Position numbers and translations under genes: made by a program. Below are positions 19,471 to 56,209 of a stretch of DNA of 64,000 bases, piece after piece; the stretch's first letter is position 1, and each line of letters begins with the position of its first letter. This stretch comes from Carpediemonas membranifera BICM (lineage: Eukaryota > Protista > Fornicata). The stretch lies in NCBI GenBank assembly GCA_019828565.1, contig JAHDYR010000038.1, positions 1,128,552 through 1,192,551 of the forward strand, given 5' to 3'. The notes under the pieces were generated by a model, which was not told where the DNA came from, ran no database searches, and saw nothing but the letters and a program-made list of their open reading frames with translations.

Positions 19471-19524
19471 GCAAGCTCAGTCCGGGGCCTGACACCAGGC
19501 AAATGTAAATTTCTTTCTTTCTTT
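19471..19524 (+). mobile_element. 54-bp 5'-truncated retroposon remnant with (TTTC)n tail and 16-bp TSD
   Basis: CGATGCCCAGGAGCGG is duplicated at 19455-19470 and 19525-19540. The insert is absent from the five sister RT copies. Confidence 0.85.
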
Positions 19525-26116: not shown

Positions 26117-26219
26117 TGTAGTGGTCACCTGACCCGTACATATTTAGGCCATATTTACCACTAGGGTTCGACCCTATTTAAACACTTCGCATTGATTGTT
26201 GTTGTTCTGTGCCCACCAC

Positions 26220-26231
26220 AGTAATATTACT
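26220..26231 (+). other. Palindrome at the PBS position, family A (AGTAATATTACT)
   Basis: Perfect 12-bp palindrome starting on the last base of the 5' LTR. Confidence 0.9.
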
Positions 26232-26237
26232 ATCTAG

Positions 26238-29200
26238 ATGAACGTAGAACAACTATCAACTTTCCTGGCACCCTATCTCACTAGTACGAAGCCTAAGGCA
26301 TGGTATTCATTCCGGGAAGCCTTCATTGCCCATTACGCACGAAACGCCGCTTCCAAGCCTCTGATCTTCGATTACGTCGCAGCGACGGTTTTGAAGATCA
26401 TGTTCCTCGAATGCCCGGACCTCGAAGACCTTATTACTCGTGCCCGTGAGGTCACACAGCAACCCCGCGCTGCGCCTAGGGACCCCCTTCTGTTCCTCGC
26501 GCCCCCTGAGTCTGACACTGATGACGACACCGAGTCTGACACTGATAGTTCGGTCTCCGACGAGTCCGAGCATCTACCCGTTCACACACCCGAGACCCCT
26601 AACGACTTCAACAAAAGATTTATCTCAATGGTGAACGACATCTTCGGACCCCTCGACCGTCAGGACGCGCTCGACCGATTTGACTCGATTACCTTTGACA
26701 CCGCCAGCAAGAACGTTTATGAGTCCATGCTCTACTACACGTTAATCTACCAGCGGACACTCGAAAACTGCGCCTCTGTACCCCCGAAGCAGTCGAGCCT
26801 CGTAGCCAAATTCCTGAAGGGCATCCGCAATGATCGCTTACGTGAACGCTGTAAGACCTTTGAGGATAAGTCCTCCATCGCCAACACCATGCGCGCCGCT
26901 CTCTCCCAAGCCAAGAAGATGCAGCAAGCCGAGAAGGAATCCCACAAGTCGCGGAAGAAGGACGTAAATGATAGGTCCTACGCGCACGATTTCCTCGCTG
27001 CTACGGTTGAAGAGTACTTAGACGCAATGTCAGCCGAAACGCCTGAAGACGATCAAGCAGAACACCGCCCAGTCTTCAAAGTCAGACTGCACGGATCCTC
27101 CGTGCGCGCCCTCTACGACACAGGTGCCACCGCCAACTTCCTCCATGAGGCGAAAGCGAAGTCCCTGGGCCTCATCCCCATTCCTGAGTGCCACAGGGTT
27201 CGCCTCATGTCAGGCCAACTAATCAACACCTCCCACGTGGCCTACGATACTGTCCTGTACCCTTCTGTGACAGGTAGACCCCTCTCTGTACGCACAAAGT
27301 TTATCCTCATCTCACTCGACCATTACGATGCGATCATCGGGTTCCCACTCCTGCGCAGCGCGGGACTGATCAAGATACCCTCGCCTGACCCGACTCCGTC
27401 AAACCAGAACGACGACGACGAGATGTTCGAAAACGAGGTCGAGAGAACAGTCCCAGAATATGTGCAGTTTGCAGAAGCCAGCCAAAGGATTGTTGAAAAG
27501 TTCCCAGGCCTATTCGGGGACATTTCCAGCCCGTCCAAGCTCCCAGCATTCTCCCTGAAGACCAAGAATGGCCAGGTCATCAACTGCTTCCCATATCGTC
27601 ACGGCAAGCAGGTGGAAGATGAGGTTAATCGCCAGGTTAAGGAGCTGCTTGCTCTGGACGTCATCGAGCCTTCGGAATCAGCCTTCAATAACCCCATCGT
27701 CATGGCAAAGAAGAGAGGCAACAAGCTTCGCCTCTGCCTCGACTTTAGACGGCTGAACCTTATCACCCAGGCCGAGGAGCATCCCCTACCCCTCATCGAC
27801 GACTTGATTGATCACCTACAAGGCCAACAGTTTTACGCCACGCTGGACCTATCCAAAGCGTTCCACCAGATCATAATCAACCAGGACTCGCGCAAGTATA
27901 CCGCTTTTGTGGCTGGTGGGAAGAAATACCAGTATAAGCGGATGCCCTTTGGGCTTCGTAATGCTCCCATCCACTGCCAGAAAGCCATGGAACACATTCT
28001 GGGTCAATCCCTTTATACTCAGTGTCTCGCTTACATAGATGACATTGTCGTCTTTGGAGCGAACCGTGACGAGTTCCTGAAGAATCTGGAGGACGTGTTA
28101 GCTCGCATCCACGCGGCCGGTCTGAAGCTTAATCCTTCCAAGACGGTCATTGGAGCGACTTCCATCGACTATTTGGGCTGGCGAGTAGACAAGGACGGTA
28201 AGCGGATCTTCCCCGACCGTCTGGAGGCCATCCATGATCTCAAGGAGCCGACTAGTCTGACGGACGCCCGAGCCTTGCTCGGGTTCGCGAACTACTTTCG
28301 AGCACTCATTGAGCGTTACGTCGATATGACTGAACCCATCACCGAGCTCACCCGAGCCGCCGAAAAGTTCGTTTGGGGCGACCGACAACATGACGCGTTT
28401 GAGCAGATTAAGCGAGAGCTTCTACTGCAGCGCACGCTGGTCCACCCCTGTCCCGACGAACATCTCCACATTTTTACGGACGCATCAGACTACGGCATTG
28501 GTGGCGTGCTGATGAACGCGGAGTTTAAGCCCATCGCGTTCTTCGCCAAGACGCTCACGCCCCAACAGCGCCGTTGGTCTACGATAGAGAAAGAGTGCTA
28601 CGCTCTGTACTTCGGTACTACCAAGTTCAGACGCTATCTCGCTGGACGAGACTTCACAGCTCATCTAGATCACCGTAACTTGGTCTACATGGACCGTTCC
28701 TTGAATTCCAAGGTGATTAGGTGGAGCCTCGCGCTGTCTGAGTACTCATTCGACATCGTACACGTTCCAGGTTCCGACAACTCTGTTGCGGACACCCTGT
28801 CCCGCCTCGTTCACCTGGACGAGACCTCCGTCGAACCTTCCCCTCCACCCGAGGCGCATCGGGAATCCTTCCAAGAAGCACATGGCGGAGATGCTGGTCA
28901 CCTTGGCCGTGATGCCACCTGCAAACGCATCATAGCCGCCGACAAGGGCTGGCCTGGCATGCGCCGGGACGTTACTGCCTGGATAAGACAGTGCCCTGTT
29001 TGCCAGTTGACACGCCTCAAGCTTTCACCGTTTCCCCAAGCGACCCATCCCATGACCGGCAGCCGACCCTTCGAAGTAGTGGAGGCCGACACCATTGGTC
29101 CCCTCTCACTGCCCGGGCAACACACCGCTACGCGGTTGTGATTATCGACACGTTTACTAGACTCACCCAAGCCTACCCCCACGAAGAGCACGGACGCTGT

Positions 29201-30095
29201 ATCTGCACGTTCGGCTTTATCGACATGGATGAAACACTATGGCTCCCCGACATGTTTGATTACCGATGGTGGCTCACAGTACCATAACAGAACCATCAGA
29301 GAATTTTGCCAAGACCACGGTATAAGACACGAGATCGGTACGCCTTATCATCCTGCGGGACAGGGTGCTGTTGAAAGAGCGAACAAAGAGGTGAAGAGAC
29401 ACCTACGCGCCTGGATTCTCGAACATGACGACGACTGGGAGGACGCCTTACCACGAATCACGAATATAATCAACAACGCACCTCTAACCGCCTCCAACCT
29501 GTCGCCGTACGAAGTCCTATACGCCAGGGACGTCCACGAACCGACTAGACAACCTTCCCTCACCGTCGACCACTTCCGTACCACCCTACGCTGTTTACAG
29601 AGCAGACAACGCGCTGTCGGTGGCCAAACTCCAGCGCAGAGCCATCCAGCGAGTCATCTCCTTGGATCCGCCGCCATGATCCAGCGCAAAACTGCCATAG
29701 GCATCGTACCCCGGGGCCCGGTCCGGGTCATCTCCACCAATCCCGACCGCCCCAACACCTACGTCGTTCAAGACCTCACCACTGACCACCGCCTGACAGT
29801 ACATGCCTCTGAGCTTTACCAGTTCGAGGGCAGCTACACTGACGCTGAGCTCAAACACTGGGCAGCCCGCAACGAAGGAGAGTACGTGGTTAGGAAGGTT
29901 GCTGACCATCGCCGACAAGCGGGCAACCTTCAGTTCCTCCTCTTGTGGGAGGGCTACGATGACGACGAAGGCACATGGACCGATTACAGCCGCGAAATCG
30001 ATGGATTAGCTGCCCTGGACGCATACATTAATGAGCATCCGAGATTGAAGCTTCCATCGCTCAGGAAGGGACGCCACGCCGGTAAATCCCCCTGA
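26238..30095 (+). CDS. Family A gag-pol (PR, RT, RH, IN, chromodomain); frameshifts near 29130-29190
   Basis: YDTGA, YIDD, TDAS, TDGGSQ, GAVER, EYVVRKVADHR..QFLLLWEGY..TW. Confidence 0.9.
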
Positions 30096-30718
30096 GACGT
30101 GTGCTGTTGATGTTGTTTGATGAAGAAAGAAGAGAAGAAGAGGAAAAGTGATTGCAATCACGAGGATAATGATAATGAACGCAAATGATCACCTAAGAGA
30201 GAGAGAGAGAGCGTGAACTCGCCGAAACGAACTAATGAGAAGCGATGAAACTGAAGAAGCGAGACAGAAGCGCGAAAGAGACAGAAATGGAGAAGAATGA
30301 AGTATAGAGCGTGAAGAAGATCATAGTTACGTACCAATCCGTCGTCACTGGCAACTTAGACGCAATGACTCATTTTGTGCCAAATCTGACAAAAAGGACC
30401 AAATTTCCGAAGATCGCAAAAGGAATTTAGATTAGGTCTGGGGACGACAAGATCTTTTATATTTGATCGATATCTTTCAATTTGATGACAATCCACAATG
30501 TTATGGTGGAAGTCATGGGGGCAGTGTAGTGGTCACCTGACCCGTACATATTTAGGCCATATTTACCACTAGGGTTCGACCCTATTTAAACACTTCGCAT
30601 TGATTGTTGTTGTTCTGTGCCCACCACAGGGCGTACATGAACTACACGGTCGCACTTGAGGCATAGTGACGCATCACCTGATTAAAACGAATTCTCGAAT
30701 ACCCGTCGTTTACGCCAC

Positions 30719-30732
30719 AGTGATTAATCACT
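30719..30732 (+). other. Palindrome at the PBS position, family B (AGTGATTAATCACT)
   Basis: Perfect 14-bp palindrome starting on the last LTR base. Confidence 0.9.
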
Positions 30733-30736
30733 CCCT

Positions 30737-32323
30737 ATGGCTACGAAATTCGACGTAAGTTCCCTTCCACTGCTCAACTCCGCCGCGAAGGAATACAAGC
30801 GGGAACTTCCTCATGCAAGATTTCCTACATCGTTCCTCAGATGCCTAAGCATCAGCTCGCAGGAGTTCTTACGGGCCAATTGGAGACCCACCTCTGATTA
30901 TAAGACCTTCGAGGACCTAGAAGACGATGTATGTCCCGATGCGGTAATCCGCAGCGCCATTAGGCGCGAGATGAAGCTCTCACTTCCCATCACGCCCCCA
31001 AGCACCTCCACGCCACCCCCCAAGCAGGCAGTAGCCCGTCTAACCGCCGCTCTCGAAGAAGACCTGTTTATGCTCGCTGAAGCGGCGGCCGCGGCCTTTC
31101 CTGAAGGCCCGATGGCCGCGGCTGCACAGCGCCGCGCAGAAGCCGTATTCACGGCTGCAGTAGCCGAGATTGACCACAACGCCCCGGTTTATGTGCCCCT
31201 CATCAACAAGTTCAACCCAGATGTCCCCCTCCGCGACGACGAGTACGTCGCCGAGGTCAACGCAGCCCTGGCCCCACCCAAGCCGGCCGATGACGAGGCT
31301 GCCGCCACCAACAACTCCGACACGTCCAGTGACGAGTCCGACTGGGACGACGTCACCGACATTCGCGCCTACCTCCATGACGAGGCCGACGACATCGTAG
31401 CCGCCTGCTCCGTCACACTCATGCCGTCCCTGGACGTCGGCGCGCGCATCAAGTCCATCAACCTTCCCGGTGCACTCTATGGCAAAGCATCCAAACATCG
31501 CTCAACTATTGCCGCTTTGCGCGAGTTCATCGATCTCGTGAACACTGATGCTTCTGCTCCTGCACTGCAAGCCAGAAGGTTCTCGCCGCAAGAGTCAGAG
31601 AGCTTGCACTTAAGGGATTCTCCGCCGAAGCAAAGGACTATTTCGACTCCTACATCATAGATGATGCAGAGGACATCGATGACGTCCTTGATAACCTTAG
31701 GGACCTCAAAGAGGACCACGACGGTTACATCGTCGTTCCTTGGAGAGCATTCCGCACCGGCCAGCCCCCGCAACCCCACGGTGAGCAAGCGACAGGCGGA
31801 TCCCGCACACGCAAACCCATAGCCCGCAAGATCAGCGGCCCAGACCCGTATGTCCAGCTGAAAGACAAGGCGAACTACTACATCAACCCCACCTTCCGCC
31901 ACTTCTGCGACTACCACGGATACAACTCGTCCCACGTCACTCAGGCGTGCCCTCATCTGAAGACACAGCGCAGTGCCGCCCCCCAACCATCGCGTCCTAT
32001 TCAACCAGCTGTTGTGGGTGCCAAGCCCAAGAAGGCCCCTGGCCACCACAACAACCCTGACCGACCTGCAACAATGACCACCCAAGCGCCCAAACGCAAC
32101 GCGAGAGCCCCTAACCCAGCGGCAGGCTGGACGCGAAACAAGGAGACGAACCGGCTCGAGCGCCTCAGTCAATCCATCAACGAGGTCGACATAGACGCCG
32201 AGTCCGACACCGATGAGTCAATCGACGAAGTCGACACGTCAGCGCAGCGCGAAAACATCGGTAAGCCGATCTACCACGACATCCTCGTCAACGGCACGAG
32301 ACTGCGGGCGAAGCTCGACCCGG
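30737..32323 (+). pseudogene. Family B gag and protease N-terminus (frameshifted; cut by C1)
   Basis: ATG 4 nt after the palindrome; knuckle-like CDYHGYNSSHVTQAC; ILVNGTRLRAKLD at the break. Confidence 0.75.
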
Positions 32324-32383
32324 TGTCATAAGGCATCCACGTCCGCAGTTTATGTAAATGTTCCAATCTCTTCGCCCCGGCAC

Positions 32384-32393
32384 AGTGATCACT
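32384..32393 (+). other. Palindrome at the PBS position, family C (AGTGATCACT)
   Basis: Perfect 10-bp palindrome starting on the last LTR base; also at 55200-55209 in copy 2. Confidence 0.9.
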
Positions 32394-32400
32394 TTCCGAA

Positions 32401-35400
32401 ATGAATAATTGGATTCCGCCATCACTATCGGACTTCTCTAGAGAGTCCGTTCGCGCGTTCAAACGCGCCCTCACGTTCGCGCAGAAGCATGCTCCTACCA
32501 CAACCGTCATAACGGCTTACGAGTGCCTCACCGAGGATCAAGTCAGTCATGTCCGATTTGTCCGCAACGTCGACGTCGAAGCACTCAACGACGCAGAACT
32601 TCTCGCCGAAATCACCGCTCTTTCTTTCCCGAGAACCCTTGAGAAAACCATCCAAGAAATCCGGGCCCTCACGCAGGACCGAACCAAGTCCACGATCGAG
32701 GCCGTATCTCGTCTCATGGCTGAGACCGAGGGAGCTGCGCTCCCACGCCCATGCCCTTCTCAACGCCGAGCTCGGCGCCAAGCCAGAGCCCGAGCCCGCC
32801 GAGGTGGATGAAGACGAGGCCGCCCTCAGCAAGGTCATCACCCAGAAGCCAGACAGCACGCCGAGTGAGCAGGACACCCCGAGAAAAGCCAGCCCCACCC
32901 GCGGACTCGATAAGATCATCGCCAAAGCTTTTATCGCCGCCCTTCGCCCGGTCTCACTTGCCAACCGTATTCAGCAAAAGTGGGACCTCTCTGGCGCCCG
33001 GGACATCGATAGCTTATTTGTGCACACGCGCGAGCTCATACTGCACGCCATTGACGCCCGTGAAGTCCTCGGAAGCGTGATTCAAGACATATCCATCACA
33101 TCCTCCAGCACGAGCTCCATCACGAGCTCCAGCACTGGCCCGAAACATAGCCAGAACGCCAACACCAGATCCCGCCGCGAGCGCCGGCGCCCTCCTCCAT
33201 ACGCGTGCTCCTGTGGAGGCATGCACTGGAAGGCTGATTGCCCGCACCGCGGCATCACGCCCGGACAGCCCCAGGCTACCAAAGGCCACCCCGCCGCGGC
33301 CCGCGACGCCAGACCGGCACCTCAGCCGCAACGCCAGCCCCAAGCGGCCAACAAACCGGCTCAGCCACAGCCGGCACCAGCTGCTCAGAAGCAGCAGCAA
33401 CAGTCATCCCAGCAGCCACAGCCTCGCCCCCGACGAGAGACGCGCTGGGAACATGGTGCTCCGGGACAGATCCAAGCTGATCAACTCTCGTCCAGGAGTC
33501 CACGAAGTCGAAGTCGCACACAATGCTTGTGATGATGCCTTTATCGAAGAAGTTGCCGCTTCAACTGCATTCTCAGTTAAGGGAGCTGTGAATGACCAAG
33601 AACAGGTGATATTGATCGATAGCGGCTCCGCAATCACGATCATCTCCACAACCTCCGTTAAGACGCTCCAACTCGTCACACATGAGCTTGAAAAGCCATT
33701 TACTGTTCAGTCCGTTACCAATGAGCCCATCCTCATCACTCACTACGTCCAAGCGCGGATCACGTTGCCCAGCACATCTGGAAACGTCATCGTCGATCTC
33801 ATCCTCTACATCATGACACGCGCCACTGAACGTGTGCTCATTGGATGCGACGTGCTTCGCGCGCTCGGTTATCTCTCCGAGAGTGGCCTCCACATCCCAC
33901 TTCTTCCGGATTCACGCCCGGAGGACGCCACCGATGGCCTCCCACTCCACAAGTACCTCGACGCCCCCGTCGAGGCCGTCTCCTCAAGCGAGTTTCACAC
34001 CGACGCGTGTGAGATACACGAGCTCTCCACCAAGGCCCAGACCGACGAGCTACATTCGATCCTCCGTCGGTTCGATCACCTATTCGACCCCGTCATAAGC
34101 AAACAGCCGTGCTCGTTTGCCCCTATGCGCATCCCGCTTTACGACAACGCCCCTCCGATCCGTCTTCGCCCGCGCAACCTACACCCGAAGAAGCTGGAGT
34201 GGCTGTTGCCATACGTCGAGCGCCTGCGCCAGGACGAGATCACACAGCCCTCTGAGGGGCCTTACGCAAGCCCCATCGTCCTGGTCGCAAAGGGCGACGC
34301 CTACCGTCTCTGTATCGACTACGGCCGCCTCAACTCTTGGACAGTACCCGACCGGCACCCGATCCCCAACATGCGAGAACTCCTCAACCTCGCGTCGGGC
34401 TGCACACGCTTTGCGACGCTAGACCTGACGTCGGGCTACTGGCAGGTGGCCATGCACCCAGACGACGTGCCTAAGACGGCCTTCACCGCCCCGGGCGTCT
34501 ACGAGGAATTCCTCAGGATGCCGTTCGGCCTTTGCAACGCGCCTTCTCACTTCCAGCGGGAGATCGAAGGCATGCTCGCCCCACTGTTGTACAAGGGCGC
34601 CAACCCCTACATCGACGACATATTCATCTACGCCCGTGACGATGACTCCTTCCTACGCATTCTCCGCGACCTGCTCACACGCGCGGACGCTGCAGGCGTT
34701 CAGTTCAGCGCCAAGAAGGGAGTCTTCGGCACCACCAGCGCCAAGATTGTCGGCTTTACGGTCGACCAGGCCGGAGTACACGTCGACCCAGCCAGGACCC
34801 AAGCCCTACGCAATCTACCTGCACCCACCAACGTCCACGAGCTTCGCGTAGTCCTCGGACAGTTCCAGTACCTCGCATCATTCGTTCCCCATACACGACA
34901 CGAGTACATGAGACCTCTCAACGATCTTCTGCAAAAGGACCGTCTGTGGGAATGGACAGCGGAGCACGACGCCGCTTTCGACGGCCTGAAGACCCTGTTC
35001 ACTGACGATCTCTTTATCGCACATCCGGACGCCGACGCCGACTGGACGCTCGAGACAGACGCTAGCAACATCGGAGCAGGCGGCGTACTATGGCAGACAA
35101 AGGACGACAAGACACAGGTCCTCGCCTACTTCTCTCACACATTCACGTCAACCCAGTCGCGCTGGGCCACGTGTGAGCAGGAGCTATTTGCCATTGTCTT
35201 TTGCCTTACACACCCGACCCTGTCACCCCTCCTACGCCTGAAGAGGTTCCTCCTACGGACCGACCACCGTAATCTTATTTACATGATCGCCAAGTCATCC
35301 GAGAACGACAAGATCAACCGGTGGAGACTGACATTAGCAGACTACAAGTTCGATGTCGAGCACGTTCCCGGCCTACAGAACGCAGTCGCAGACGCGCTGA

Positions 35401-36853
35401 GCCGCTGCGGTCACTCGACCTCGCCCACTGTCGCAGCCATCACGACTGACTCCCGCTACCATGACACACTCATCAAACACCAGACAGACGACTCTACCGT
35501 CTCCAAGCTGACCGTAGACAGCGACGGTCTTCGCCGCAAGGACGGCCTCGTCGTCATCCCTACTTCAACCGTGTGCAGACCCCTCCGAAAGGAGCTGATA
35601 CAGATCGCCCACAGAGGACACCACGGCGCCAAGGCTACCATCGAACGCCTGAGAGCAGACGGCTATACCTGGACAGGCTGCACAGCAGATGTCGAGGAGT
35701 TCATCGCCTCATGTGACGAGTGCCAGAAAGCTCGCCTACGCAACTTCGCCGAGGCAGAGCTCCGCACAACAGCAGTGTACAAACCGTTCCACACTGTCGC
35801 AGTGGATACTATTGGTCCAATCCCGGCAGACGCAGTCGGCTCCAGATACATCACAGTTATGGTCGATATGTTTACTCGCTACACTGAGTTGGCCGCGACG
35901 GACGAGAACACAGCTGATGCAGCGTCAGAGGCCCTCTGGCGCCAGGTGATTACCCGTCATGGGACTCCCCTGTTCATCAAGTCCGACAACGGGCCTGAGT
36001 TCACCGGCAACGTCGTCAAGGCCCTGCTCGAAAGCGCGGACATCACCCAGCAATTCACCCTCCCCTACCACCCTCAGTCGAATGGGCTGGTAGAGCGTCG
36101 TAACGCGGAGGTCATGAAGCATCTTCGCTGTTTGATCCTCCATTCGACAAGTTCTCCCGTTGGAGCGACCTCCTTCCGGTAGTTCAGCTGCTGCTGAACA
36201 CAACCACCTGCAGCGCCACTGGGGTCACACCCCACGCCATGCTGTATGGAGACCAACTCGACCCCAGCTCCACAGTCGCTAGAATCCTCCGACCGAGCGA
36301 CAATGACTCGCCCCTTGCCTCAGCCTCAGCCTACATCACTTTACTTCGAGCCCACCTCTCCAAGTTGACCTCTAGGGCGGCCGAGAAGCAGCGCGAGACT
36401 GTAGACAAGCGCCTCGCCAAGGCCAACGCCGACCGCCAGCCGACTAGCTTCAAGGAAGGCGACCTCGTCCTGCTCAACCGGACGAAGACCCCAAAGCTGC
36501 ATGGCTTCGCCGGCCCGTTCAAGATTCTCGCCATCAAGGACAACAACACCCTTCAGCTGGTCGACCTTTTCGAGAGCGCCCCCTTCATGGCTCACGTAGA
36601 CCAGGTCCTTCCTTTCAACACCAAGTCGGGGCTCAGCCGCCTGAAGAACCTCGCCGCCTCCGACGAGCAGACGTACGTCGTGCAAGGCATCGAGAAGCAC
36701 CGTCGCCGCAACGGCACACTGCAGCTCCTCGTCTGCTGGGAGGGCGACTACGATCCCACATGGGAACCCGCTGACGGGCTCCGCCACGTCACTGCGGCAC
36801 GTGACTACCTCAAGTCCCACAAGCTCAAGCTTAAGGGGGGTAGGATGTCATAA
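32401..36853 (+). CDS. Family C gag-pol (knuckle, PR, RT, RH, IN, chromodomain) with single-base indels
   Basis: CSCGGMHWKADC, IDSGS, YIDD, TDAS, SDNGPEF, NGLVER, YVVQGIEKHR..LLVCWEG..TWEP. Confidence 0.9.
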
Positions 36854-36906
36854 GGCATCCACGTCCGCAGTTTATGTAAATGTTCCAATCTCTTCGCCCC
36901 GGCACA

Positions 36907-39900
36907 CCGGCAGCCGCCAAGACCTGTATCTCGGAGGCCACGTTCGCCACGCTGAAGGAGGCCGGCCCGGTAATGATCACAAATCATGCTTACACGCTGA
37001 AGATGGCCGACCAGCGACCTTGCGAGGACACCACCGCCGTCATAGCCGAGCTCGTTATCGACGGCATCGTACCAAACGCTGTCGAGCTGACGTGGACCGT
37101 ACCAGTCATCTCCGGGGAGGCCCACAAGTTCCTGTTCGGGGCAGACCTCCTCCGGCACCTAGGCCTCATGTCGGACACGGGCATCAACATTCAGCTACCA
37201 CCGTCAGCGGAGGACCCCGCCGACGATGTCACACCGGCCCAGAATCAATACATCGACGAGGTTGACTCGGAGACTGACGACCTGCCGGACGACGTCTCGT
37301 CCTTCGCCACGCCAACCTTCGACATTGACCCCTCGTTCCCTCTACACGACGAGCTACTCGCTGTGCTCCAGGCCAACGCCGACGTCTTCGACCCCAAGCT
37401 GCCTCTCGGCGGCGCCGACATCGCGGAAGCCACCATTGACCTGAAGCCGGACGCCATTCTGCCACAAGCCAACCCACGCGGCATCCGCGCCGACTGGCTT
37501 CCCGAGATCAAGCGACAGCTCCATGAAATGTACGAAGCCCAGCTCATCCGCGACGCACACGGCCCAGTCTCTAGCCCGGCTGTGATTGTCCAGAAGAAGC
37601 CCGACGCGGACGGACGCCGCCCACTACGACTTTGCGCAGACTACAGGGCCCTCAACGAGGCAACTGTGACTGACGCTTTCCCCATGACAGATGCCCGCAC
37701 GCTCATCCAGGACCTCGTCGGCAGCAAGTACTTCTTCGGTCTAGACCTTCGCCAAGGGTTTCACCAGATGCCATTGAAGGATGCCCACCGTTACCTGTCC
37801 GCGGTGCGGGTCCCGGGCGAGTTTTTCGAATATATGGTCGCCCCGTTTGGCCTAAAGAACCTCCCCGCACAATTCCAGCGGGCCATCGCCAACGTCCTGC
37901 GCCCGGTATACTCAGAGGGCGTCAGGAACTACATAGACGACATCTTTGCTGGCGCGCCATCGCCCGAGGTACTCGTCATGCGCACCCAGCGCACGCTCGC
38001 TCTACTCAGTGACAAGAACATCAGGCTGCGCGCCGAGAAGTGTCATTTTGGCTACCAGACTCTCGACTGTCTCGGCGAGATCGTCTCCGAACACGGTCGT
38101 CGCCCTCAGCCCTCACGCATTGACACGATCAAGAGCCTCCCACGCCCGACGACCACGCACGAGGTACGTCAGATCCTCGGCCACATCAACTACGTGGCAG
38201 ATTTTATCCCTGACTGCCAGCGCATCCTAGCGCCCATCAATGGCCTCCTCCGCAAGGACGCCAAGGTCGTGTGGACTTCAGCACACCAAGAGGCTATCGC
38301 GGCTGTTCTGACACAGCTCGCCTCTGAGGAGTCACTCGCCATACCAGACCTCTCCAAACCCTGGCGCCTCGAGACGGACGCTAGTCTCCTCGGCCTAGGC
38401 GGCATACTGCTACAACAGCAAACGCCCACAGACTGGAGAGTCGTCGCCTACTTCTCCAAGGCGTTCTCGGACGTTCAACAAAGATGGAGCACCTACGACC
38501 AGGAGATGTATGCTCTGATATACTGTCTGACACGTCCTGACATGTACTCTCTCTTCCTGGGCCACCCCGATCTGACCGTGTTCACCGACCACAAGAATCT
38601 GATGGCACTCCACCGCATGGCCGCTCACAATCGGAAGCATCGCCGATGGCTACTGTCGTTCTTGGAGTTCAGACTCAAGATCCACCACGTCCCGGGCGAG
38701 TCCAACGTCACGGCCGACTTCTTAAGCCGTTTCCCTTTCCAGACCCGCCCCGCAGAGATCGCCGAGGTCACGGCTAACACGCTAGAGTCGAGAGTGCTCG
38801 CCTCTCAGAAGGAGCACGCTGACGAGAGACCCTCCAAGCACACCATCGTCAACGGTGTCGTCAAGTATCACGGTCGCACATTCGTACCCGCCGACGCGCG
38901 TCGCGACGTCCTAGCCGAGGCCCACCGGCTGCACTTGGGCGTCAAGAAGACCGCTCAGGCCGTGCGTGACTTGGGTTACGACTGGCCACAGCTCGAACAC
39001 ACCGTATCCGACCTGATCAACGCCTGTTTGATCTGTCAGAAGACCCGTCTGGCGAACTTCATCAAGCTGAAGATGGGCGCGACCCCGAGCAGCACACCAT
39101 TCGAACGCGTAGCCGTCGACACGCTCGGCCCCATCTCAGAGGACTCGGCCGGCAACCGGTATGTCGTCGTGATTACTGACACATTCACGCACTTTACTGA
39201 GCTCGTGCCAGCCCCCTCGAACAATGCAGACGCGGCTGCCGCCGCTATCTGGGCGTCTATCTGCCGCCACGGCATCCCGGCCATCCTGCACACAGACGGA
39301 GGCCCGGAATACGCCAACCGTATCATCACCGCTCTAACCGAGCGCTTATCGGTCACACACCACCGGACCACGCCTTTCCATCCGCAGTCGAACGGTCACG
39401 TCGAACGCGTCAATCGCGAAATCAAGCGCCACCTACGTACCCTAGCGCTGGCATTTAACTCCTTCGACGCATGGTCCACGACCCTACTGCCATATGTCGC
39501 GTGGATAATCAACAGCACGGTTCACAGCGCGACGGGGTTCACCCCGTTCGAGCTACTCTACGGCACACACGCTGCCGACCGGCAGATACCCCAGCCAGAC
39601 AACAACGCCGAGGACGAGACCCCGCTTACCTCTGTCGCCGAATACCTCACCGTCATGGACGCGCTCCTGGCCAAGCTCTGCCGCAAGGCTCACAAACGCC
39701 AGTCCAAGACTCGTGAGGGGGAGGGCAGAGACGCAGTCGGTTCCAGTCAAGCCCGGTGATTACGTCTTGCGCAAGAACCACGCTGAAAGCAAGCTCCACG
39801 GCCACACCGGACCGTTCAAGGTCATTGAGGTCAACCCGTTCACGGCAGTCGTCGTACCGCTCCTCGCCAACGAACCGCGACGCACAGTCCACCTGTCCCA

Positions 39901-40147
39901 CCTCATTCCGCTCAAGTCCGACCTCTCTGAGGGCGAGCTCGCCTACTTCGCCGCTACAGACCAAGAGGAATGGTACGTTGAACGGATCGTCAAGTCCAAG
40001 CCCGGCTTCCTGCGCGTCAAGTGGCTCGGTAGCTCCGAGCTGTCCTGGGAGCCCATCGACGCCGTCCGCCACACTCCCGCCGCCAAGAAGTTCTTAGCCG
40101 CTCACCCCGAGCTGCTCAGGGAGGGCAGTGACGCATCACCTGATTAA
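36907..40147 (+). CDS. Family B pol (rest of PR, RT, RH, IN, chromodomain); frameshift near 39720
   Basis: LDLRQGFHQ, YIDD, TDAS, TDGGPEY, NGHVER, EWYVERIV..RVKWLG..SWEP. Confidence 0.9.
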
Positions 40148-40181
40148 AACGAATTCTCGAATACCCGTCGTTTACGCCACA

Positions 40182-41080
40182 ATAGATCATAAGGCTCGAG
40201 TTTGCTTGGTTCTGTACGGTCGCAAAAGAGGTCTTCGTACTCTTTGAGCAGCTTGATTTGCTGGCTCGCGATATCATCAGGTAGGGTAAGAGCCTTGGCT
40301 TCGAACTTGCTCGGGACGGGTGGATCGTCGGTGGCTTCACTCTCTGGGTCGCTGGGCTGCGCCATCGAGGGTAGCAATCCAATCTCGACCATTTGTCCGT
40401 GCCAAAACTGACATCGTACGCAGTTTTGAGGACGAATGCGCGGATCTTCAGGGCGCAGCCACGTGGCGTGAAGGGAGATGGCCTCAACGTGATCTGTACC
40501 GATACGGTGCCTTCAGCTTCTCGGATTCCACCTGCCGTCTGGATGCGTACAGTATCGTGGTTGATCCAGATCACGGCCGGCGAGGAGCACTGGTTGGGAG
40601 ATATCGTGGCGCAATCAGCGCCAGAGTCAAGTAATACCTTCACTTCTGCCTTATCGATAGCTCCATCGACAACTGGCAACGACCCACCACCTGACGCAGC
40701 AGAAAATAAACACTTCGCCCTGTTTACTGGGGACTTAAAGCGGCAGAACTTCTCGAGGTGGCCCTGCTTCTTGCACACCGGGCATGTGGAACGATCTCGC
40801 GGACACTTGAAGGATGGATGTCCAGTTTCGCCACAGTTGTAGCATACCAGCTCGCGCTTGCCCTCTCCTCGCTGGTTCGAGGGCTTAGAGGCTGGCTTGT
40901 CATGATGATGAGGCTTGATGATGGGTTTGGGGGAGGGGTGACTGGGTTCGTGGTGATGACCGCGATGGGGCTTGCCCGCCTTAGCCTTAGTTGACGACAG
41001 CTTGTCGGTCATCCCGACGGAACGAAGCATGGCGCGCGACTCCTCGATGTCGCGGGCTATATCAATCACACGCGGCATAG
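40182..41080 (-). pseudogene. Element Z gag C-terminus (two CCHC knuckles) and aspartic protease
   Basis: CYNCGETGHPSFKC, CPVCKKQGHLEKFC, LLDSGA. Confidence 0.88.
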
Positions 41081-41172
41081 TGTCAGTGCCTCAGTTATTA
41101 TTATTGCTATTTATAACTACGGGCACACTCACCCCTGCTTCGCAGGTTATGTGTAAATACTGTTGTCGCCAC

Positions 41173-41184
41173 AGAATCGATTCT
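41173..41184 (+). other. Palindrome at the PBS position, family D (AGAATCGATTCT)
   Basis: Perfect 12-bp palindrome starting on the last LTR base. Confidence 0.9.
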
Positions 41185-41195
41185 AGTACAGACTC

Positions 41196-44965: not shown

Positions 44966-45094
44966 TGTCAGCGCGGCACTTCAATCAAATATTTATTTGA
45001 TTGATGATCCGATCCGATCCCCGGGCAGGGTCCCGAATCGTCTTTTTGTTTTGCTTGTAAAGCTTCACCCCCCCGTTTCGTCTGCGAAACGAAC

Positions 45095-45106
45095 AGTATT
45101 AATACT
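45095..45106 (+). other. Palindrome at the PBS position, family E (AGTATTAATACT)
   Basis: Perfect 12-bp palindrome starting on the last LTR base. Confidence 0.9.
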
Positions 45107-45112
45107 AGTTTG

Positions 45113-48100: not shown

Positions 48101-49305
48101 ACAACACCGCGGTTGGTCATGTGGGCCCCCCCGAGATGATACGCCGTCTGCGAAAGGCGGGCGTCCAGTGGCCCGGCATGTGGGAGGATGCCCGAGCTTT
48201 CTTCACAACGTGCACCGAGTGCCAGCGTGTCCGCCCAGGCCAGCGCTTGCCGGTCCCCCAACACCCAGACCTGCGGACAATACCCTTCCAGTCCGTCCAG
48301 GTCGACACCCTGGGCCCGTTTGCCCAGGACGAACACGGCCAGAAGTACGTCGTCGTGATCGTAGACGCGTTCTCTCGACACGTTTCTCTATTCCCGACGC
48401 ACACTACGTCAGCAAAAGACGCCGCCGACGCAATCTACAAGTTCTGCGCCGCGTTCGGCGTGCCGGAGTTCATACAGACGGACCAAGGCTCGCAGTACAA
48501 GAACAGTTTAATCGAAGAGCTCACAAGAAGCCTCACGATCGAACACCGCTTCTCTACGCCGTACCACCCCCAAGCAAACGGAAAGGTCGAACGCATGAAT
48601 GCTGAGATCGCCCGTCACATGAGGACGCTCGTAGATGAACACGAAGCCGCTTGGAGCGACATGCTCCCGCAAGTGGCCCTCATACTCAACTCGCGAGTAC
48701 ACCCCGTGACCCATCAGTCCCCGTTGACCCTCCTCTTTGGTCACGACGGCTTCCACAAGGATACTCAGAGTCGGGAGGAGCGCTACACACGAGCCAGGAA
48801 CTCTGTCTCCCGCGACCATGCCAAGAAGCTCGGCCGTGTTGCGTCCACGACCTACCGAGCTTATACCAGCGGGAGCCTCGTACTGCTGGCCCCCATCAAG
48901 CCGATGAAGCTGGCCATGAAGTGGCGCGGCCCGTTCCGCGTCATACAGGAGGGGAAGGTCAAGGGATCGGTCATCATTCAGTCCCTCACCGACGACGCCG
49001 ACCAGTTCACCGTCGCGTCAGAGCGCCTCCGGCCTTTCCACCGCCGCCGAGGCCAGTCACTCGCAGAACTTCGGGCACTCGTAGCCCGCCAAGACCGTGA
49101 GTTCGAGGTCGAGTCCGTCAAGGACCTCGACATGAAGGGTCGCCGTCTCCGTGTCCGCTGGAAGGGTTATGAGCCCGAGGAGGACTCCTGGATCCCGCTA
49201 AACCAGGAGAACTACCGCCTGCAAGCCCTGGACGCCTATCTACTGGATCACCCGACGGCTGTGGCACCCCTCGAGGCGCTGGCTCGTCGTCGCCGCTGGC
49301 GATGA
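45113..49305 (+). CDS. Family E gag-pol (PR, RT, RH, IN, chromodomain); frameshifts near 45415 and 47655
   Basis: IIDTGA, YLDD, TDAS, TDQGSQY, NGKVER, EFEVESV..RVRWKGY..DSWIP. Confidence 0.9.
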
Positions 49306-49802
49306 TGATCCCCATCTGATCGGGACCTTAGCACGTCCTAAACTATAAACTGCTGTCTGAGAAGCTTGATGTTGCTTAATTGAGACTAATGGACCGCTTG
49401 CGAGGAAGAATCCCGTCGAAGATCCGAAGCTTTCGTGAAAGTTCTTGTATCTCGCCAACGAGGGCAACGAGGGCCTATTGAGGCCAATGGAGGTCATTTT
49501 CAGCACCTAGGAGCTCTTTAGCTCAATAACCTCCTTCAATGGAGTTGTTCGTCTTCACGCTCAACTATCTAATCAAACCATCGCATTTGATGGGTTTCGG
49601 ATGAAATATCATAGACCAGTCCTCGCCGCCGCGCCCGTTACTCGTGGTCGTTACCACTGGGAGGGAAGTGTCAGCGCGGCACTTCAATCAAATATTTATT
49701 TGATTGATGATCCGATCCGATCCCCGGGCAGGGTCCCGAATCGTCTTTTTGTTTTGCTTGTAAAGCTTCACCCCCCCGTTTCGTCTGCGAAACGAACAGC
49801 GC

Positions 49803-50060
49803 ATGATCGCAGCGCCCGTCAGCCCAGAGGCGGCCCTCAAAATGGCGGCCCTGGATCACGACGAACTTGTCGTCGAAGCCATCCTGGATCACGACCTGAG
49901 GAAGGAACCAGGCCTGATCAAGATTCTCTGGGCAGGATTCGAACGCTCAGAGGCTACGTGGGAACCTCTAGATGCAGAGAACCGCCAGCTCGTCGCATTA
50001 GACAGTTACTTGTTGACGCTACCGCCCGACGAGCGCTCAAAGCTGGAAAAGCGACTATAG
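49803..50060 (+). CDS. Family D integrase C-terminal chromodomain, separated from its pol by element E
   Basis: ELVVEAILDH..IKILWAGF..ATWEP; continues ...IHGER across the GCGC TSD. Confidence 0.85.
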   Translation: MIAAPVSPEAALKMAALDHDELVVEAILDHDLRKEPGLIKILWAGFERSEATWEPLDAENRQLVALDSYLLTLPPDERSKLEKRL

Positions 50061-50685
50061 AACATCAGCCCATCCTAATCTCATGTTGATGTTGCTTATT
50101 GTACAAACATTCATCCGAACGAACGCAGTTCGAACAGGAACATCATGCATTCCCTCATCGAGAACCGATAGCAGGAAAAGGGGGGAAAGAAGGACTTTCT
50201 AACAAGTATCCTTCGCGTTTCGAACACACCAGGCTCATTCTGGACATCATACCGTCATCACGAACAACTCGCTCATCAATTGATCCGCTGTTCGACAAAA
50301 GTGACCATCCCGGGACTCGAACCCAGACTCCTGGCGAATATCGTGGAGAATATCCTCGAGATCTGACCGAAAGATTTGATGACATCAAAACATATCTTCG
50401 GCACCATCATTCATACGCCCCACTTACAGCTCGAGGGGGGTAGTGTCAGTGCCTCAGTTATTATTATTGCTATTTATAACTACGGGCACACTCACCCCTG
50501 CTTCGCAGGTTATGTGTAAATACTGTTGTCGCCACAATAGCCTGTTCGAGGGAGAAGCCTTCGGTGAGATCCTTAACCTTGTACTGGATGCGTGAGTTAT
50601 CGGGCAGCTTAAAGCAACGCGTGTATGTGTCGCAGAGGACCTCAGAGTCTAGCCCCTGGAAGGGAGATGAGGGTTCTGAACCGTC

Positions 50686-53600
50686 TGTGCCGGGGCGAAG
50701 AGATTGGAACATTTACATAAACTGCGGACGTGGATGCCTTATGACATCCTACCCCCCTTAAGCTTGAGCTTGTGGGACTTGAGGTAGTCACGTGCCGCAG
50801 TGACGTGGCGGAGCCCGTCAGCGGGTTCCCATGTGGGATCGTAGTCGCCCTCCCAGCAGACGAGGAGCTGCAGTGTGCCGTTGCGGCGACGGTGCTTCTC
50901 GATGCCTTGCACGACGTACGTCTGCTCGTCGGAGGCGGCGAGGTTCTTCAGGCGGCTGAGCCCCGACTTGGTGTTGAAAGGAAGGACCTGGTCTACGTGA
51001 GCCATGAAGGGGGCGCTCTCGAAAAGGTCGACCAGCTGAAGGGTGTTGTTGTCCTTGATGGCGAGAATCTTGAACGGGCCGGCGAAGCCATGCAGCTTTG
51101 GGGTCTTCGTCCGGTTGAGCAGGACGAGGTCGCCTTCCTTGAAGCTAGTCGGCTGGCGGTCGGCGTTGGCCTTGGCGAGGCGCTTGTCTACAGTCTCGCG
51201 CTGCTTCTCGGCCGCCCTAGAGGTCAACTTGGAGAGGTGGGCTCGAAGTAAAGTGATGTAGGCTGAGGCTGAGGCAAGGGGCGAGTCATTGTCGCTCGGT
51301 CGGAGGATTCTAGCGACTGTGGAGCTGGGGTCGAGTTGGTCTCCATACAGCATGGCGTGGGGTGTGACCCCAGTGGCGCTGCAGGTGGTTGTGTTCAGCA
51401 GCAGCTGAACTACCGGAAGGAGGTCGCTCCAACGGGAGAACTTGTCGAATTGGAGGATCAAACAGCGAAGATGCTTCATGACCTCCGCGTTACGACGCTC
51501 TACCAGCCCATTCGACTGAGGGTGGTAGGGGAGGGTGAATTGCTGGGTGATGTCCGCGCTTTCGAGCAGGGCCTTGACGACGTTGCCGGTGAACTCAGGC
51601 CCGTTGTCGGACTTGATGAACAGGGGAGTCCCATGACGGGTAATCACCTGGCGCCAGAGGGCCTCTGACGCTGCATCAGCTGTGTTCTCGTCCGTCGCGG
51701 CCAACTCAGTGTAGCGAGTAAACATATCGACCATAACTGTGATGTATCTGGAGCCGACTGCGTCTGCCGGGATTGGACCAATAGTATCCACTGCGACAGT
51801 GTGGAACGGTTTGTACACTGCTGTTGTGCGGAGCTCTGCCTCGGCGAAGTTGCGTAGGCGAGCTTTCTGGCACTCGTCACATGAGGCGATGAACTCCTCG
51901 ACATCTGCTGTGCAGCCTGTCCAGGTATAGCCGTCTGCTCTCAGGCGTTCGATGGTAGCCTTGGCGCCGTGGTGTCCTCTGTGGGCGATCTGTATCAGCT
52001 CCTTTCGGAGGGGTCTGCACACGGTTGAAGTAGGGATGACGACGAGGCCGTCCTTGCGGCGAAGACCGTCGCTGTCTACGGTCAGCTTGGAGACGGTAGA
52101 GTCGTCTGTCTGGTGTTTGATGAGTGTGTCATGGTAGCGGGAGTCAGTCGTGATGGCTGCGACAGTGGGCGAGGTCGAGTGACCGCAGCGGCTCAGCGCG
52201 TCTGCGACTGCGTTCTGTAGGCCGGGAACGTGCTCGACATCGAACTTGTAGTCTGCTAATGTCAGTCTCCACCGGTTGATCTTGTCGTTCTCGGATGACT
52301 TGGCGATCATGTAAATAAGATTACGGTGGTCGGTCCGTAGGAGGAACCTCTTCAGGCGTAGGAGGGGTGACAGGGTCGGGTGTGTAAGGCAAAAGACAAT
52401 GGCAAATAGCTCCTGCTCACACGTGGCCCAGCGCGACTGGGTTGACGTGAATGTGTGAGAGAAGTAGGCGAGGACCTGTGTCTTATCGTCCTTTGTCTGC
52501 CATAGTACGCCGCCTGCTCCGATGTTGCTAGCGTCTGTCTCGAGCGTCCAGTCGGCGTCGGCGTCCGGATGTGCGATAAAGAGATCGTCAGTGAACAGGG
52601 TCTTCAGGCCGTCGAAAGCGGCGTCGTGCTCCGCTGTCCATTCCCACAGACGGTCCTTTTTGCAGAAGATCGTTGAGAGGTCTCATGTACTCGTGTCGTG
52701 TATGGGGAACGAATGATGCGAGGTACTGGAACTGTCCGAGGACTACGCGAAGCTCGTGGACGTTGGTGGGTGCAGGTAGATCGCGTAGGGCTTGGGTCCT
52801 GGCTGGGTCGACGTGTACTCCGGCCTGGTCGACCGTAAAGCCGACAATCTTGGCGCTGGTGGTGCCGAAGACTCCCTTCTTGGCGCTGAACTGAACGCCT
52901 GCAGCGTCCGCGCGTGTGAGCAGGTCGCGGAGAATGCGTAGGAAGGAGTCATCGTCACGGGCGTAGATGAATATGTCGTCGATGTAGGGGTTGGCGCCCT
53001 TGTACAACAGTGGGGCGAGCATGCCTTCGATCTCCCGCTGGAAGTGAGAAGGCGCGTTGCAAAGGCCGAACGGCATCCTGAGGAATTCCTCGTAGACGCC
53101 CGGGGCGGTGAAGGCCGTCTTAGGCACGTCGTCTGGGTGCATGGCCACCTGCCAGTAGCCCGACGTCAGGTCTAGCGTCGCAAAGCGTGTGCAGCCCGAC
53201 GCGAGGTTGAGGAGTTCTCGCATGTTGGGGATCGGGTGCCGGTCGGGTACTGTCCAAGAGTTGAGGCGGCCGTAGTCGATACAGAGACGGTAGGCGTCGC
53301 CCTTTGCGACCAGGACGATGGGGCTTGCGTAAGGCCCCTCAGAGGGCTGTGTGATCTCGTCCTGGCGCAGGCGCTCGACGTATGGCAACAGCCACTCCAG
53401 CTTCTTCGGGTGTAGGTTGCGCGGGCGAAGACGGATCGGAGGGGCGTTGTCGTAAAGCGGGATGCGCATAGGGGCAAACGAGCACGGCTGTTTGCTTATG
53501 ACGGGGTCGAATAGGTGATCGAACCGACGGAGGATCGAATGTAGCTCGTCGGTCTGGGCCTTGGTGGAGAGCTCGTGTATCTCACACGCGTCGGTGTGAA

Positions 53601-55269
53601 ACTCGCTTGAGGAGACGGCCTCGACGGGGGCGTCGAGGTACTTGTGGAGTGGGGAGGCCATCGGTGGCGTCCTCCGGGCGTGAATCCGGAAGAAGTGGGA
53701 TGTGGAGGCCACTCTCAGAGAGATAACCGAGCGCGCGAAGCACGTCGCATCCAATGAGCACACGTTCAGTGGCGCGCGTCATGATGTAGAGGATGAGATC
53801 GACGATGACGTTTCCAGATGTGCTGGGCAACGTGATCCGCGCTTGGACGTAGTGAGTGATGAGGATGGGCTCATTGGTAACGGACTGAACAGTAAATGGC
53901 TTTTCAAGCTCATGTGTGACGAGTTGGAGCGTCTTAACGGAGGTTGTGGAGATGATCGTGATTGCGGAGCCGCTATCGATCAATATCACCTGTTCTTGGT
54001 CATTCACAGCTCCCTTAACTGAGAATGCAGTTGAAGCGGCAACTTCTTCGATAAAGGCATCATCACAAGCATTGTGTGCGACTTCGACTTCGTGGACTCC
54101 TGGACGAGAGTTGATCAGCTTGGATCTGTCCCGGAGCACCATGTTCCCAGCGCGTCTCTCGTCGGGGCGAGGCTGTGGCTGCTGGGATGACTGTTGCTGC
54201 TGCTTCTGAGCAGCTGGTGCCGGCTGTGGCTGAGCCGGTTTGTTGGCCGCTTGGGGCTGGCGTTGCGGCTGAGGTGCCGGTCTGGCGTCGCGGGCCGCGG
54301 CGGGGTGGCCTTTGGTAGCCTGGGGCTGTCCGGGCGTGCTGCCGCGGTGCGGGCAATCAGCCTTCCAGTGCATGCCTCCACAGGAGCACGCGTATGGAGG
54401 AGGGCGCCGGCGCTCGCGGCGGGATCTGGTGTTGGCGTTCTGGCTATGTTTCGGGCCAGTGCTGGAGCTCGTGATGGAGCTCGTGCTGGAGGATGTGATG
54501 GATATGTCTTGAATCACGCTTCCGAGGACTTCACGGGCGTCAATGGCGTGCAGTATGAGCTCGCGCGTGTGCACAAATAAGCTATCGATGTCCCGGGCGC
54601 CAGAGAGGTCCCACTTTTGCTGAATACGGTTGGCAAGTGAGACCGGGCGAAGGGCGGCGATAAAAGCTTTGGCGATGATCTTATCGAGTCCGCGGGTGGG
54701 GCTGGCTTTTCTCGGGGTGTCCTGCTCACTCGGCGTGCTGTCTGGCTTCTGGGTGATGACCTTGCTGAGGGCGGCCTCGTCTTCATCCACCTCGGCGGGC
54801 TCGGGCTCTGGCTTGGCGCCGAGCTCGGCGTTGAGAAGGGCATGGGCGTGGGAGCGCAGCTCCTCGGTCTCAGCCATGAGACGAGATACGGCCTCGATCG
54901 TGGACTTGGTTCGGTCCTGCGTGAGGGCCCGGATTTCTTGGATGGTTTTCTCAAGGGTTCTCGGGAAAGAAAGAGCGGTGATTTCGGCGAGAAGTTCTGC
55001 GTCGTTGAGTGCTTCGACGTCGACGTTGCGGACAAATCGGACATGACTGACTTGATCCTCGGTGAGGCACTCGTAAGCCGTTATGACGGTTGTGGTAGGA
55101 GCATGCTTCTGCGCGAACGTGAGGGCGCGTTTGAACGCGCGAACGGACTCTCTAGAGAAGTCCGATAGTGATGGCGGAATCCAATTATTCATTTCGGAAA
55201 GTGATCACTGTGCCGGGGCGAAGAGATTGGAACATTTACATAAACTGCGGACGTGGATGCCTTATGACA
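50686..55269 (-). mobile_element. Chromodomain Ty3/gypsy element, family C copy 2 (inverted relative to copy 1)
   Basis: Identical 61-bp LTRs (50686-50746, 55209-55269), its own TSD CGTC, near-identical to 32324-36906. Confidence 0.95.
50739..55192 (-). CDS. Family C gag-pol, copy 2 (indels near 53650 and 52657)
   Basis: ORFs 53582-55192, 52588-53763 and 50739-52310 match copy 1. Confidence 0.9.
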
Positions 55270-55751
55270 CGTCGGTTCACTCGAACCACCTCCTGCGGGG
55301 TGAAGGACGAAATGGAGAGTCGGAACAAGTCGAGGCGGGCAGAGAAACGGGATGGCTGCAGGGCTCTACCCAGCCGCTTGAGGACGCGGTCGTCTTTCGC
55401 GAGACGCTTGGCCTTGCGCTTGCGCTTGTGCGTCTTGCGGACGGTAGCGGTAAGGATGAGGGACTGATGGGGGAGTTGCTCGTCATTCTTGGGTGTTCCG
55501 GCTACTGGAGAACCTGGCGAACCTTCAGCGTTCATTGGAACCGCGACCTCGGCCAAGGGTGTGGCTTCAGAGGTCTTGGCGAAGAGATTATAACCGAGGG
55601 CGTCTGCGTATCTTTGTACTTCGGTGTCAAACATGTCGGCAACGTTGCCATCGCCGCCTCTGGCCCGGTACTCGGACAAGTCCTCCGCGAACCGGACCAA
55701 CGACTCAATGGTCGTTTTCTTTAGCATGGGCATACTGTTGCAGGACGTCAT
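55270..55751 (-). pseudogene. Element Z gag N-terminus
   Basis: ATG 10 nt after the palindrome; MLKKTTIESLVRFAEDLSEY resembles the gag starts of C (LSDFSRESVRAFKR) and D (LDRESVRSFKR); cut by C2. Confidence 0.65.
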
Positions 55752-55761
55752 CAAAACGTTG

Positions 55762-55820
55762 AATACTAGTATTGTGGTTCGTTTGACGAAACCTTTATAT
55801 CGAGGAGAAGAATCGACACA
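55762..55820 (-). repeat. Probable 5' LTR of element Z (about 46-48 bp; outer edge unverified) plus palindrome AATACTAGTATT (55762-55773)
   Basis: Minus strand TGT(GT)CGATTC...GATATAAAG...GAACCACA, then the palindrome and the gag ATG. No partner LTR in the window. Confidence 0.6.
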
Positions 55821-56209
55821 ATGGTGTCGAGTAGAAACTCCTTGACTATCCAATATCAACATATAAACGTATAAACTGTGTAACTCTGGGTGAGACCCAT
55901 GACAGCCCTCCACTCCGGGCCCGTTACCCGAGGTAACCTTCCTGACGATGTCGCGCCATGTCGAGCTGCTATCAAGGCTTCTTGAAACTGAGCTGATTCG
56001 ATTCGGACTGTGATGTCGAACCATTGAGCCAAAAGGGACCCGGTATTCCACAGGATTTGATTCTGCCCGGGACTCCTAGGGACTGATCCACTCAAATTAA
56101 AAAACCCAACACGCCAGGGTGTTACGAGTCCCTGTAGCTAGCGCCGCACAAAAAAGTAGCTGAATTCGTAGGGACTGATGGCGTCAATAATGCTGCCGAC
56201 AATTTTGAT

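Follow-up and report, generated by a model that had tools for sequence, protein, structure and literature searches.

In textbook accounts, retrotransposons with long terminal repeats (LTRs) start minus-strand synthesis from one of two primers: a host transfer RNA (tRNA) or, as in Tf1, the 5' end of the element's own transcript. Here we examine a group of Ty3/gypsy elements from the protist Carpediemonas membranifera BICM in which the sequence that follows the 5' LTR fits neither description. The elements lie nested in one another in a 64,000-nt stretch of contig JAHDYR010000038.1 (positions 1,128,552 to 1,192,551 of the forward strand; assembly GCA_019828565.1), which we call the window and whose own numbering we use throughout. 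Each of them carries, starting on the last base of the 5' LTR, a short perfect palindrome.

Among described systems, the Tf1/sushi group offers a close parallel. Like Tf1, Tf2 and Tj1, as presented in PMC4600332, the Carpediemonas lineage combines the lack of a tRNA site with a chromodomain integrase. The primer of Tf1/sushi elements is described there as the element's own RNA, bound at a site next to the 5' LTR and freed by ribonuclease H (RNase H), whose cleavage of an RNA duplex makes the Tf1 self-primer (Levin 1996, cited in PMC4600332). Tf1 needs a U5 stem near the site, and the Carpediemonas families have a predicted tendency to form a stem between U5 and the leader. The two differ in what the site pairs with: in Tf1 it is the transcript's first 11 nt, located inside the LTR, that pair with it in cis, whereas the LTRs studied here contain no complement. 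Self-priming has further been predicted for the plant Tcn1 and TAR lineages (PMC6317226).

Three other systems invite comparison. The dimerization initiation site (DIS) of human immunodeficiency virus type 1 (HIV-1) and PAL6 of Ty3 (PMC11381356) are short palindromes in a hairpin loop near the 5' end of the RNA, a setting that is predicted for the present palindromes as well. Those sequences, however, measure 6 nt and are separate from the tRNA primer site and untied to the LTR end, whereas ours measure 10-14 nt and overlap the last base of the LTR, with no other primer site found. The dictyostelid Skipper elements are likewise chromoviruses with neither a TGG site nor an LTR complement, but they have a degenerate polypyrimidine tract, of unexplained mechanism, in place of a palindrome (PMC5006619). 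Half-tRNA priming, known from copia, Ty5 and the plant Osser and Bianca elements, also dispenses with a TGG next to the LTR; there the site matches the anticodon stem-loop region of one tRNA (PMC6317226), whereas the palindromic families match tRNAs at chance level and differ in their sites from one family to another. A search of the full-text literature, a scope that excludes subscription journals and Repbase reports, returned no LTR element described as having a primer site that is palindromic or self-complementary.

Results

A palindrome in fixed register at the 5' LTR

The nest occupies window positions 25,000-55,830. Comparing the window with itself yields six pairs of short direct repeats, which are LTR pairs with 100% identity between members. 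The LTRs are 53-130 bp long. In A, B, both copies of C, D and E they have TG..CA termini, target duplications of 4-5 bp, and a purine tract immediately 5' of the 3' LTR. Pfam matches place protease (PR), reverse transcriptase (RT), RNase H and integrase (IN) domains across A, B, C, D, E and Z, with a chromodomain matched in A. A previous reading made from the letters alone (the sequence-only reading) had called these families gypsy, and the domain order PR-RT-RNaseH-IN supports their assignment to the Ty3/gypsy chromoviruses.

That reading had also claimed a palindrome after every 5' LTR in the window. Reading the seven ends directly (A, B, C twice, D, E and Z), we find a perfect palindrome of 10-14 nt at each, at the positions claimed and always starting from the terminal A of ..CA. 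Two further observations of the same reading are borne out: nothing palindromic lies directly downstream of any 3' LTR inspected (in elements with definable LTR pairs), and the gag ATG follows the palindrome after 4-11 nt in the window. Across all families this gap is 4-14 nt. In a 262-kb sample of the genome, the share of positions at which a perfect palindrome of at least 10 nt begins is only 0.00225, so that seven out of seven in one fixed register is far beyond chance. The palindromes are AT-rich, with 23% GC against 59% for the genome.

The 262-kb survey took in 20 RT-centred loci from other parts of the genome. Among these 20 loci, every surveyed element with a definable LTR pair bears a 12-nt palindrome on the terminal A. 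Altogether, 14 elements from 12 families have 100% identical LTR pairs, and all of their 5' LTR ends carry a perfect palindrome of 10-14 nt. The survey yielded 17 distinct palindromes, eleven of them from the 20 further loci and part of them through a scan for palindrome, ATG and long open reading frame (ORF); in two instances a pair of unrelated families has an identical palindrome in common. The sequence-only reading held that no palindrome extends to the C of CA. This is true of the window but not of the genome, where three of the 17 (in L059, L065 and the second element in L051) extend to C..G. A further one (L052) may begin one base after the usual register.

Relatives with a palindrome also occur outside this genome. 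Four were found: L073 and L084, both metagenome contigs; L151, a 4.2-kb contig of NCBI assembly GCA_002919055.1 that is sister to family A and has an LTR of 75 bp; and L153, a contig from a public sequencing run. L153 ends in a poly(A) tail, has its palindrome 30 nt from its 5' end, and looks like a full-length transcript.

Several other candidates were not accepted as members. L096 has ATTTTAAAAT before an ATG, but it sits deep in the other clade and in AT-rich DNA, and we take the match as chance. L088 and L089 have a GC-rich 10-nt palindrome just past ..GACA; no LTR pair was found for them and they were left untyped. In L108 the palindrome lies inside the repeat, away from its end. Separately, an element of the other clade on L156, a metagenome contig from the European Nucleotide Archive (ENA), has ATTAGATCTAAT after a C between two long ORFs (2430-2445). 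One Carpediemonas family has exactly this sequence as its primer-site palindrome; on L156 it may be there by chance or mark the junction of two elements.

Neither tRNA nor Tf1-type complementarity

Mature tRNA ends in CCA, and a tRNA site must therefore begin with TGG next to the LTR. No palindrome family has TGG adjacent to the LTR end. The host tRNA set available for comparison was partial (24 distinct sequences, 56 genes, 50 tRNA loci; 63 scored of 497 candidates); within it, a window of 25 nt centred on the LTR ends finds best complements of 6-8 nt, always internal to the tRNA and equal to what random 25-mers give. The absence of a tRNA-type site, as originally proposed, is thus upheld against these 24 sequences.

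The same can be said of the proposed absence of a complement inside the LTRs. The longest complement between a site and its own LTR averages 4.4 nt, compared with 4.6 nt for the LTRs of other families, while the positive control, L155, gives 11 nt. Nor did tRNA or LTR complementarity reveal a separate primer-binding site in the leader, where only 4-14 nt separate the palindrome from the ATG. The palindrome families also lack a Skipper-type pyrimidine run next to the 5' LTR, and Rfam has no family in window positions 24000-56500. Although the 24-Mb genome gave 1519 first-look candidates for gypsy-type RT, copia-type RT (PF07727) was not detected in it, and tRNA-site controls were for this reason drawn from metagenome relatives.

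Covariation within the palindrome

Close relatives, separated by RT distances of 0.1-0.3, differ at symmetric positions (ATTAGTACTAAT, ATTAGATCTAAT, ATTAACGTTAAT, ATTTCTAGAAAT). When 13 different 12-nt palindromes are compared, between two and four kinds of base pair occur at five of the six pair positions, yet not one palindrome is imperfect; length also varies between families (10, 12 or 14 nt). Since symmetry and register stay constant while sequence and length change, what is conserved is the self-pairing of the site. The pattern is that expected of selection for self-pairing and not for a sequence that a protein would recognize.

Two features of the covariation bear on the nature of the pairing partner. 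First, the outermost A-T pair, whose A is the last base of the LTR, is invariant, so that the duplex extends as far as the last base of U5. Second, no family departs from complementarity at the two central pairs. Central pairs are unneeded in a hairpin loop, so that the partner is most likely a second RNA molecule, with an RNA-RNA duplex to be preferred over a hairpin. Two-strand folding predicts a 10-14 bp duplex for the palindromes, with a gain of -11 to -17 kcal/mol.

Folding of the flanks predicts, in most families, a stem between the last 10-25 nt of U5 and the 20-30 nt past the palindrome, which usually takes in the gag AUG and leaves the palindrome in the apical loop. Cognate flanks pair better than swapped ones (-12.2 versus -9.7 kcal/mol, 21 families, permutation p = 0.0003) and better than dinucleotide shuffles (mean z = -0.95 in 22 families, Wilcoxon p = 0.001), the same score at random genome positions being z = -0.11. 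U5 stems flank primer sites in retroviruses and Tf1, and in HIV-1 the U5:AUG helix favours exposure of the DIS; the predicted stem would fit priming and dimerization alike.

Palindromic elements fall within one clade

We compared RT-RNase H sequences in a tree of 80 rows, built with a quick IQ-TREE run, for which support comes from the Shimodaira-Hasegawa-like approximate likelihood ratio test (SH-aLRT) only and the non-palindromic references are environmental relatives. A branch with SH-aLRT support of 99% separates all 15 rows typed as palindromic from 62 others, most of them untyped, among which are three TGG-site elements and one of Tf1 type. In all, four outgroup relatives have a TGG site (L083, L116, L154 and, outside the tree, L120). 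The Tf1-type relative is L155 (ENA metagenome contig, 3016-3190), which is distant (25% identity) and lies opposite the palindromic rows; in it, 11 nt at LTR position 93 are complementary to sequence starting 2 nt after the LTR, the arrangement of a clear Tf1-type self-primed element. The palindromic site is therefore restricted to one clade. This is compatible with a single origin, which stays unproven because most rows on the other side are untyped.

Discussion

How might a palindrome prime?

The 3' edge of the 5' LTR marks the start of minus-strand synthesis, which requires the 3' end of any primer to lie over the bases with which the palindrome opens. By this reasoning the palindrome is located where minus-strand synthesis would initiate. 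The explanation we favour, at about even odds, is that it constitutes the primer-binding site of a compact chromodomain Ty3/gypsy lineage, with the element's own RNA serving as primer in trans. As the site pairs only with itself and has no complement in the LTR, a second RNA copy would be needed. Somewhat more tentatively, a little short of an even chance, we suggest that the co-packaged sister RNA is the primer, so that one sequence of 10-14 nt would act as dimerization site, primer and primer-binding site at once.

In outline, the U5-leader stem around the gag AUG would display the palindrome in its loop, and two RNA copies of the same family would pair through it to form a duplex of 10-14 bp. 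The RNase H of RT would then cut one strand at the 3' edge of this duplex, as in Tf1. The new 3'-OH, its last U paired to the terminal A of U5, would be extended into the U5 and R of the partner, and the primer would be the leader fragment R-U5-palindrome. The partner RNA would keep its site uncut for the second (plus-strand) transfer, and since the partner must retain the site, the cut has to be one-sided. Because primer and primer site are one sequence, any alteration of one arm would call for a compensating one in the opposite arm. Pairing in trans, cutting and extension are the parts of this scheme that we infer.

A number of points count against this proposal. One weak point is that cutting 3' of the site would part the leader from the coding body, so that the scheme needs a hypothetical asymmetric cut; another is the fate of a long RNA primer, which could be copied past the palindrome when the plus strand is made. 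A pure dimerization site would, moreover, look the same, with its palindrome in a 5' hairpin loop, and the predicted stem is a tendency, negative in z in 17 of 22 families, and not universal. The tRNA comparison rests on the partial set of 24 distinct sequences. Finally, the sole RNA candidate is a 414-nt contig from a small public run of 2017, possibly RNA, that is identical to part of the gag region of A (26315-26728). The contig would be consistent with expression of A; exact-protein look-ups of the A polyprotein and of the gag-PR ORF of the second C copy returned no transcript contigs.

Alternative explanations

There are several other scenarios that might explain a palindrome at the LTR end. 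The main rival, which we judge unlikely but live, is that the palindrome is only a dimerization or packaging signal, like HIV-1 DIS or Ty3 PAL6, while a small RNA, a protein or de novo initiation provides the start. The predicted position in a 5' hairpin loop, with a stem that often spans the gag AUG, resembles U5:AUG/DIS and PAL6 (PMC11381356), and a priming small RNA could lie outside our incomplete tRNA set. If dimerization were the only function, however, we would not expect the palindrome to be locked to the last base of the LTR in every family, given that known dimerization palindromes are 6 nt long and stand apart from the primer site. With 4-14 nt before the ATG there is, in addition, no room for a separate site, none was found, and a TGG is lacking for any mature tRNA.

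We consider it improbable that the palindrome acts at the level of DNA or translation, be it as the site of a dimeric protein, as a core promoter or initiator, or as a hairpin that controls translation ahead of gag. Its AT-richness and its place 4-14 nt before the ATG would suit such a role, and related metamonads have short AT-rich initiators near start codons. But close relatives differ in the sequence and length of the palindrome and retain its symmetry, which argues for base pairing; a promoter at this place would yield a transcript without R and U5; and the fixed register on the last LTR base would have no reason.

The sequence-only reading had offered two variants of self-priming, pairing of the two packaged RNAs and an intramolecular fold-back in which the palindrome is cut at its 3' edge and primes in cis as a hairpin. 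Of these, the dimer variant is favoured; the fold-back appears very improbable. RNAfold does give a 4-bp hairpin within the palindrome of most monomers, but a loop of at least 3 nt would free the central bases, whose two pairs are nonetheless complementary throughout, the remaining AT-rich stem of 3-5 bp is weak, and the folded 3' end would aim into the palindrome's own 5' half and not at the last LTR base.

Conventional priming by a tRNA 3' end or internal tRNA fragment, although the default for Ty3/gypsy and conceivable with short matches given that the 5' site of Ty3 is only 8 nt (PMC11381356), looks close to refuted, as a TGG is missing from the vicinity of every LTR end, the best matches to the 24 distinct tRNAs compared are internal and like those of random sequence, and the families would need about twenty different primers, all of them palindromic.

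Organization of the nest

Coordinates of the individual elements are collected in Table 1. The predicted U5-leader stem of A surrounds the palindrome and touches the gag AUG. Z, whose gag begins at 55,7xx, is a minus-strand host element that received four separate recent insertions and is now split by them (A, B, D and the second copy of C); two of these were themselves hit once, B by C and D by E. The insertion sites of B and D both read GGCATAG, with ATAG duplicated.

No 3' LTR of Z lies inside the window, and the sequence-only reading had called the LTR of Z less certain. Copies elsewhere settle its end: in a genome search with the Z LTR end, 16 places match through the palindrome and leader (5' ends) and 12 match only to query position 58-59, the terminal A (3' ends). 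The latter are typically about 5.9 kb from places of the former type and include 10 nt upstream of 55820, so that the LTR starts upstream of 55820 and further out than the sequence-only reading had assumed.

By eye, each LTR contains a TAAA-type motif (TATTTAAA, GATTAAAA, TATGTAAA, TATAAAA..) about 20-45 nt before its end, examples being window positions 26176-26184, 30681-30688 and 32349-32358. It may serve as the poly(A) signal, in which case U5 would measure just some 10-30 nt. In L153 the poly(A) tail begins 16 nt after TTAAAT.

The rest of the window (1-24500) holds tandem non-LTR elements adjoining a tRNA gene (12150-12222), with a six-fold internal amplification at 13995-24177 in units of 1343-2003 bp.

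Table 1. Elements of the nest and their parts, in window positions.
Feature	Position	Strand	Remarks
A 5' LTR	26117-26220	+	104 bp, TGTAG..CCACA; identical to 30525-30628; target duplication GGGCG
A palindromic site	26220-26231	+	AGTAATATTACT; first base is LTR terminal A
A U5-leader stem (predicted)	26193-26265	+	26193-26218 with 26236-26265; -13.4 kcal/mol, 19 bp
A gag-PR-RT-RNaseH-IN(-chromo) coding region	26238-30095	+	ORFs 26238-29141 and 29229-30095; Pfam
A 3' LTR	30525-30628	+	purine tract ending GGGGGCAG upstream; no palindrome downstream
B 5' LTR	30667-30719	+	53 bp; identical to 40129-40181; target duplication ATAG
B palindromic site	30719-30732	+	AGTGATTAATCACT; 14 nt; gag ATG at 30737
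B pol ORF	36880-39759	+	past nested C insertion; Pfam
B 3' LTR	40129-40181	+	identical to B 5' LTR
C 5' LTR	32324-32384	+	nested in B; 61 bp; identical to 36846-36906; target duplication CCGG
C palindromic site	32384-32393	+	AGTGATCACT; 10 nt
C 3' LTR	36846-36906	+	identical to C 5' LTR
D 5' LTR	41081-41173	+	93 bp; identical to 50444-50536; target duplication ATAG
D palindromic site	41173-41184	+	AGAATCGATTCT; first base is LTR terminal A
D 3' LTR	50444-50536	+	identical to D 5' LTR
E 5' LTR	44966-45095	+	nested in D; 130 bp; identical to 49669-49798; target duplication GCGC
E palindromic site	45095-45106	+	AGTATTAATACT; first base is LTR terminal A
E 3' LTR	49669-49798	+	identical to E 5' LTR
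Second C copy, 5' LTR	55209-55269	-	3' LTR 50686-50746; target duplication GACG
Second C copy, palindromic site	55200-55209	-	AGTGATCACT; same sequence as first C copy
Z 5' LTR, 3' part	55773-55830	-	ends ..CCACA at 55773; start beyond 55830
Z palindromic site	55762-55773	-	AATACTAGTATT; first base is LTR terminal A
Z RT-RNaseH piece	25016-26083	-	Pfam
Z CCHC gag piece	40116-41078	-	Pfam

Implications

Elements of this kind, whose LTRs measure 53-130 bp in the window, will escape annotation tools that require a tRNA site or an LTR length above 100 bp. If priming by a sister RNA is true, LTR elements would have a third route into minus-strand synthesis, next to tRNA priming and the cis self-priming of Tf1. 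Dimerization of the genome would be tied directly to initiation. Priming would need no RNA from the host, a way for a whole lineage to become free of host tRNAs, and would be family-specific. It would also account for the coexistence of many families in one small genome without cross-priming.

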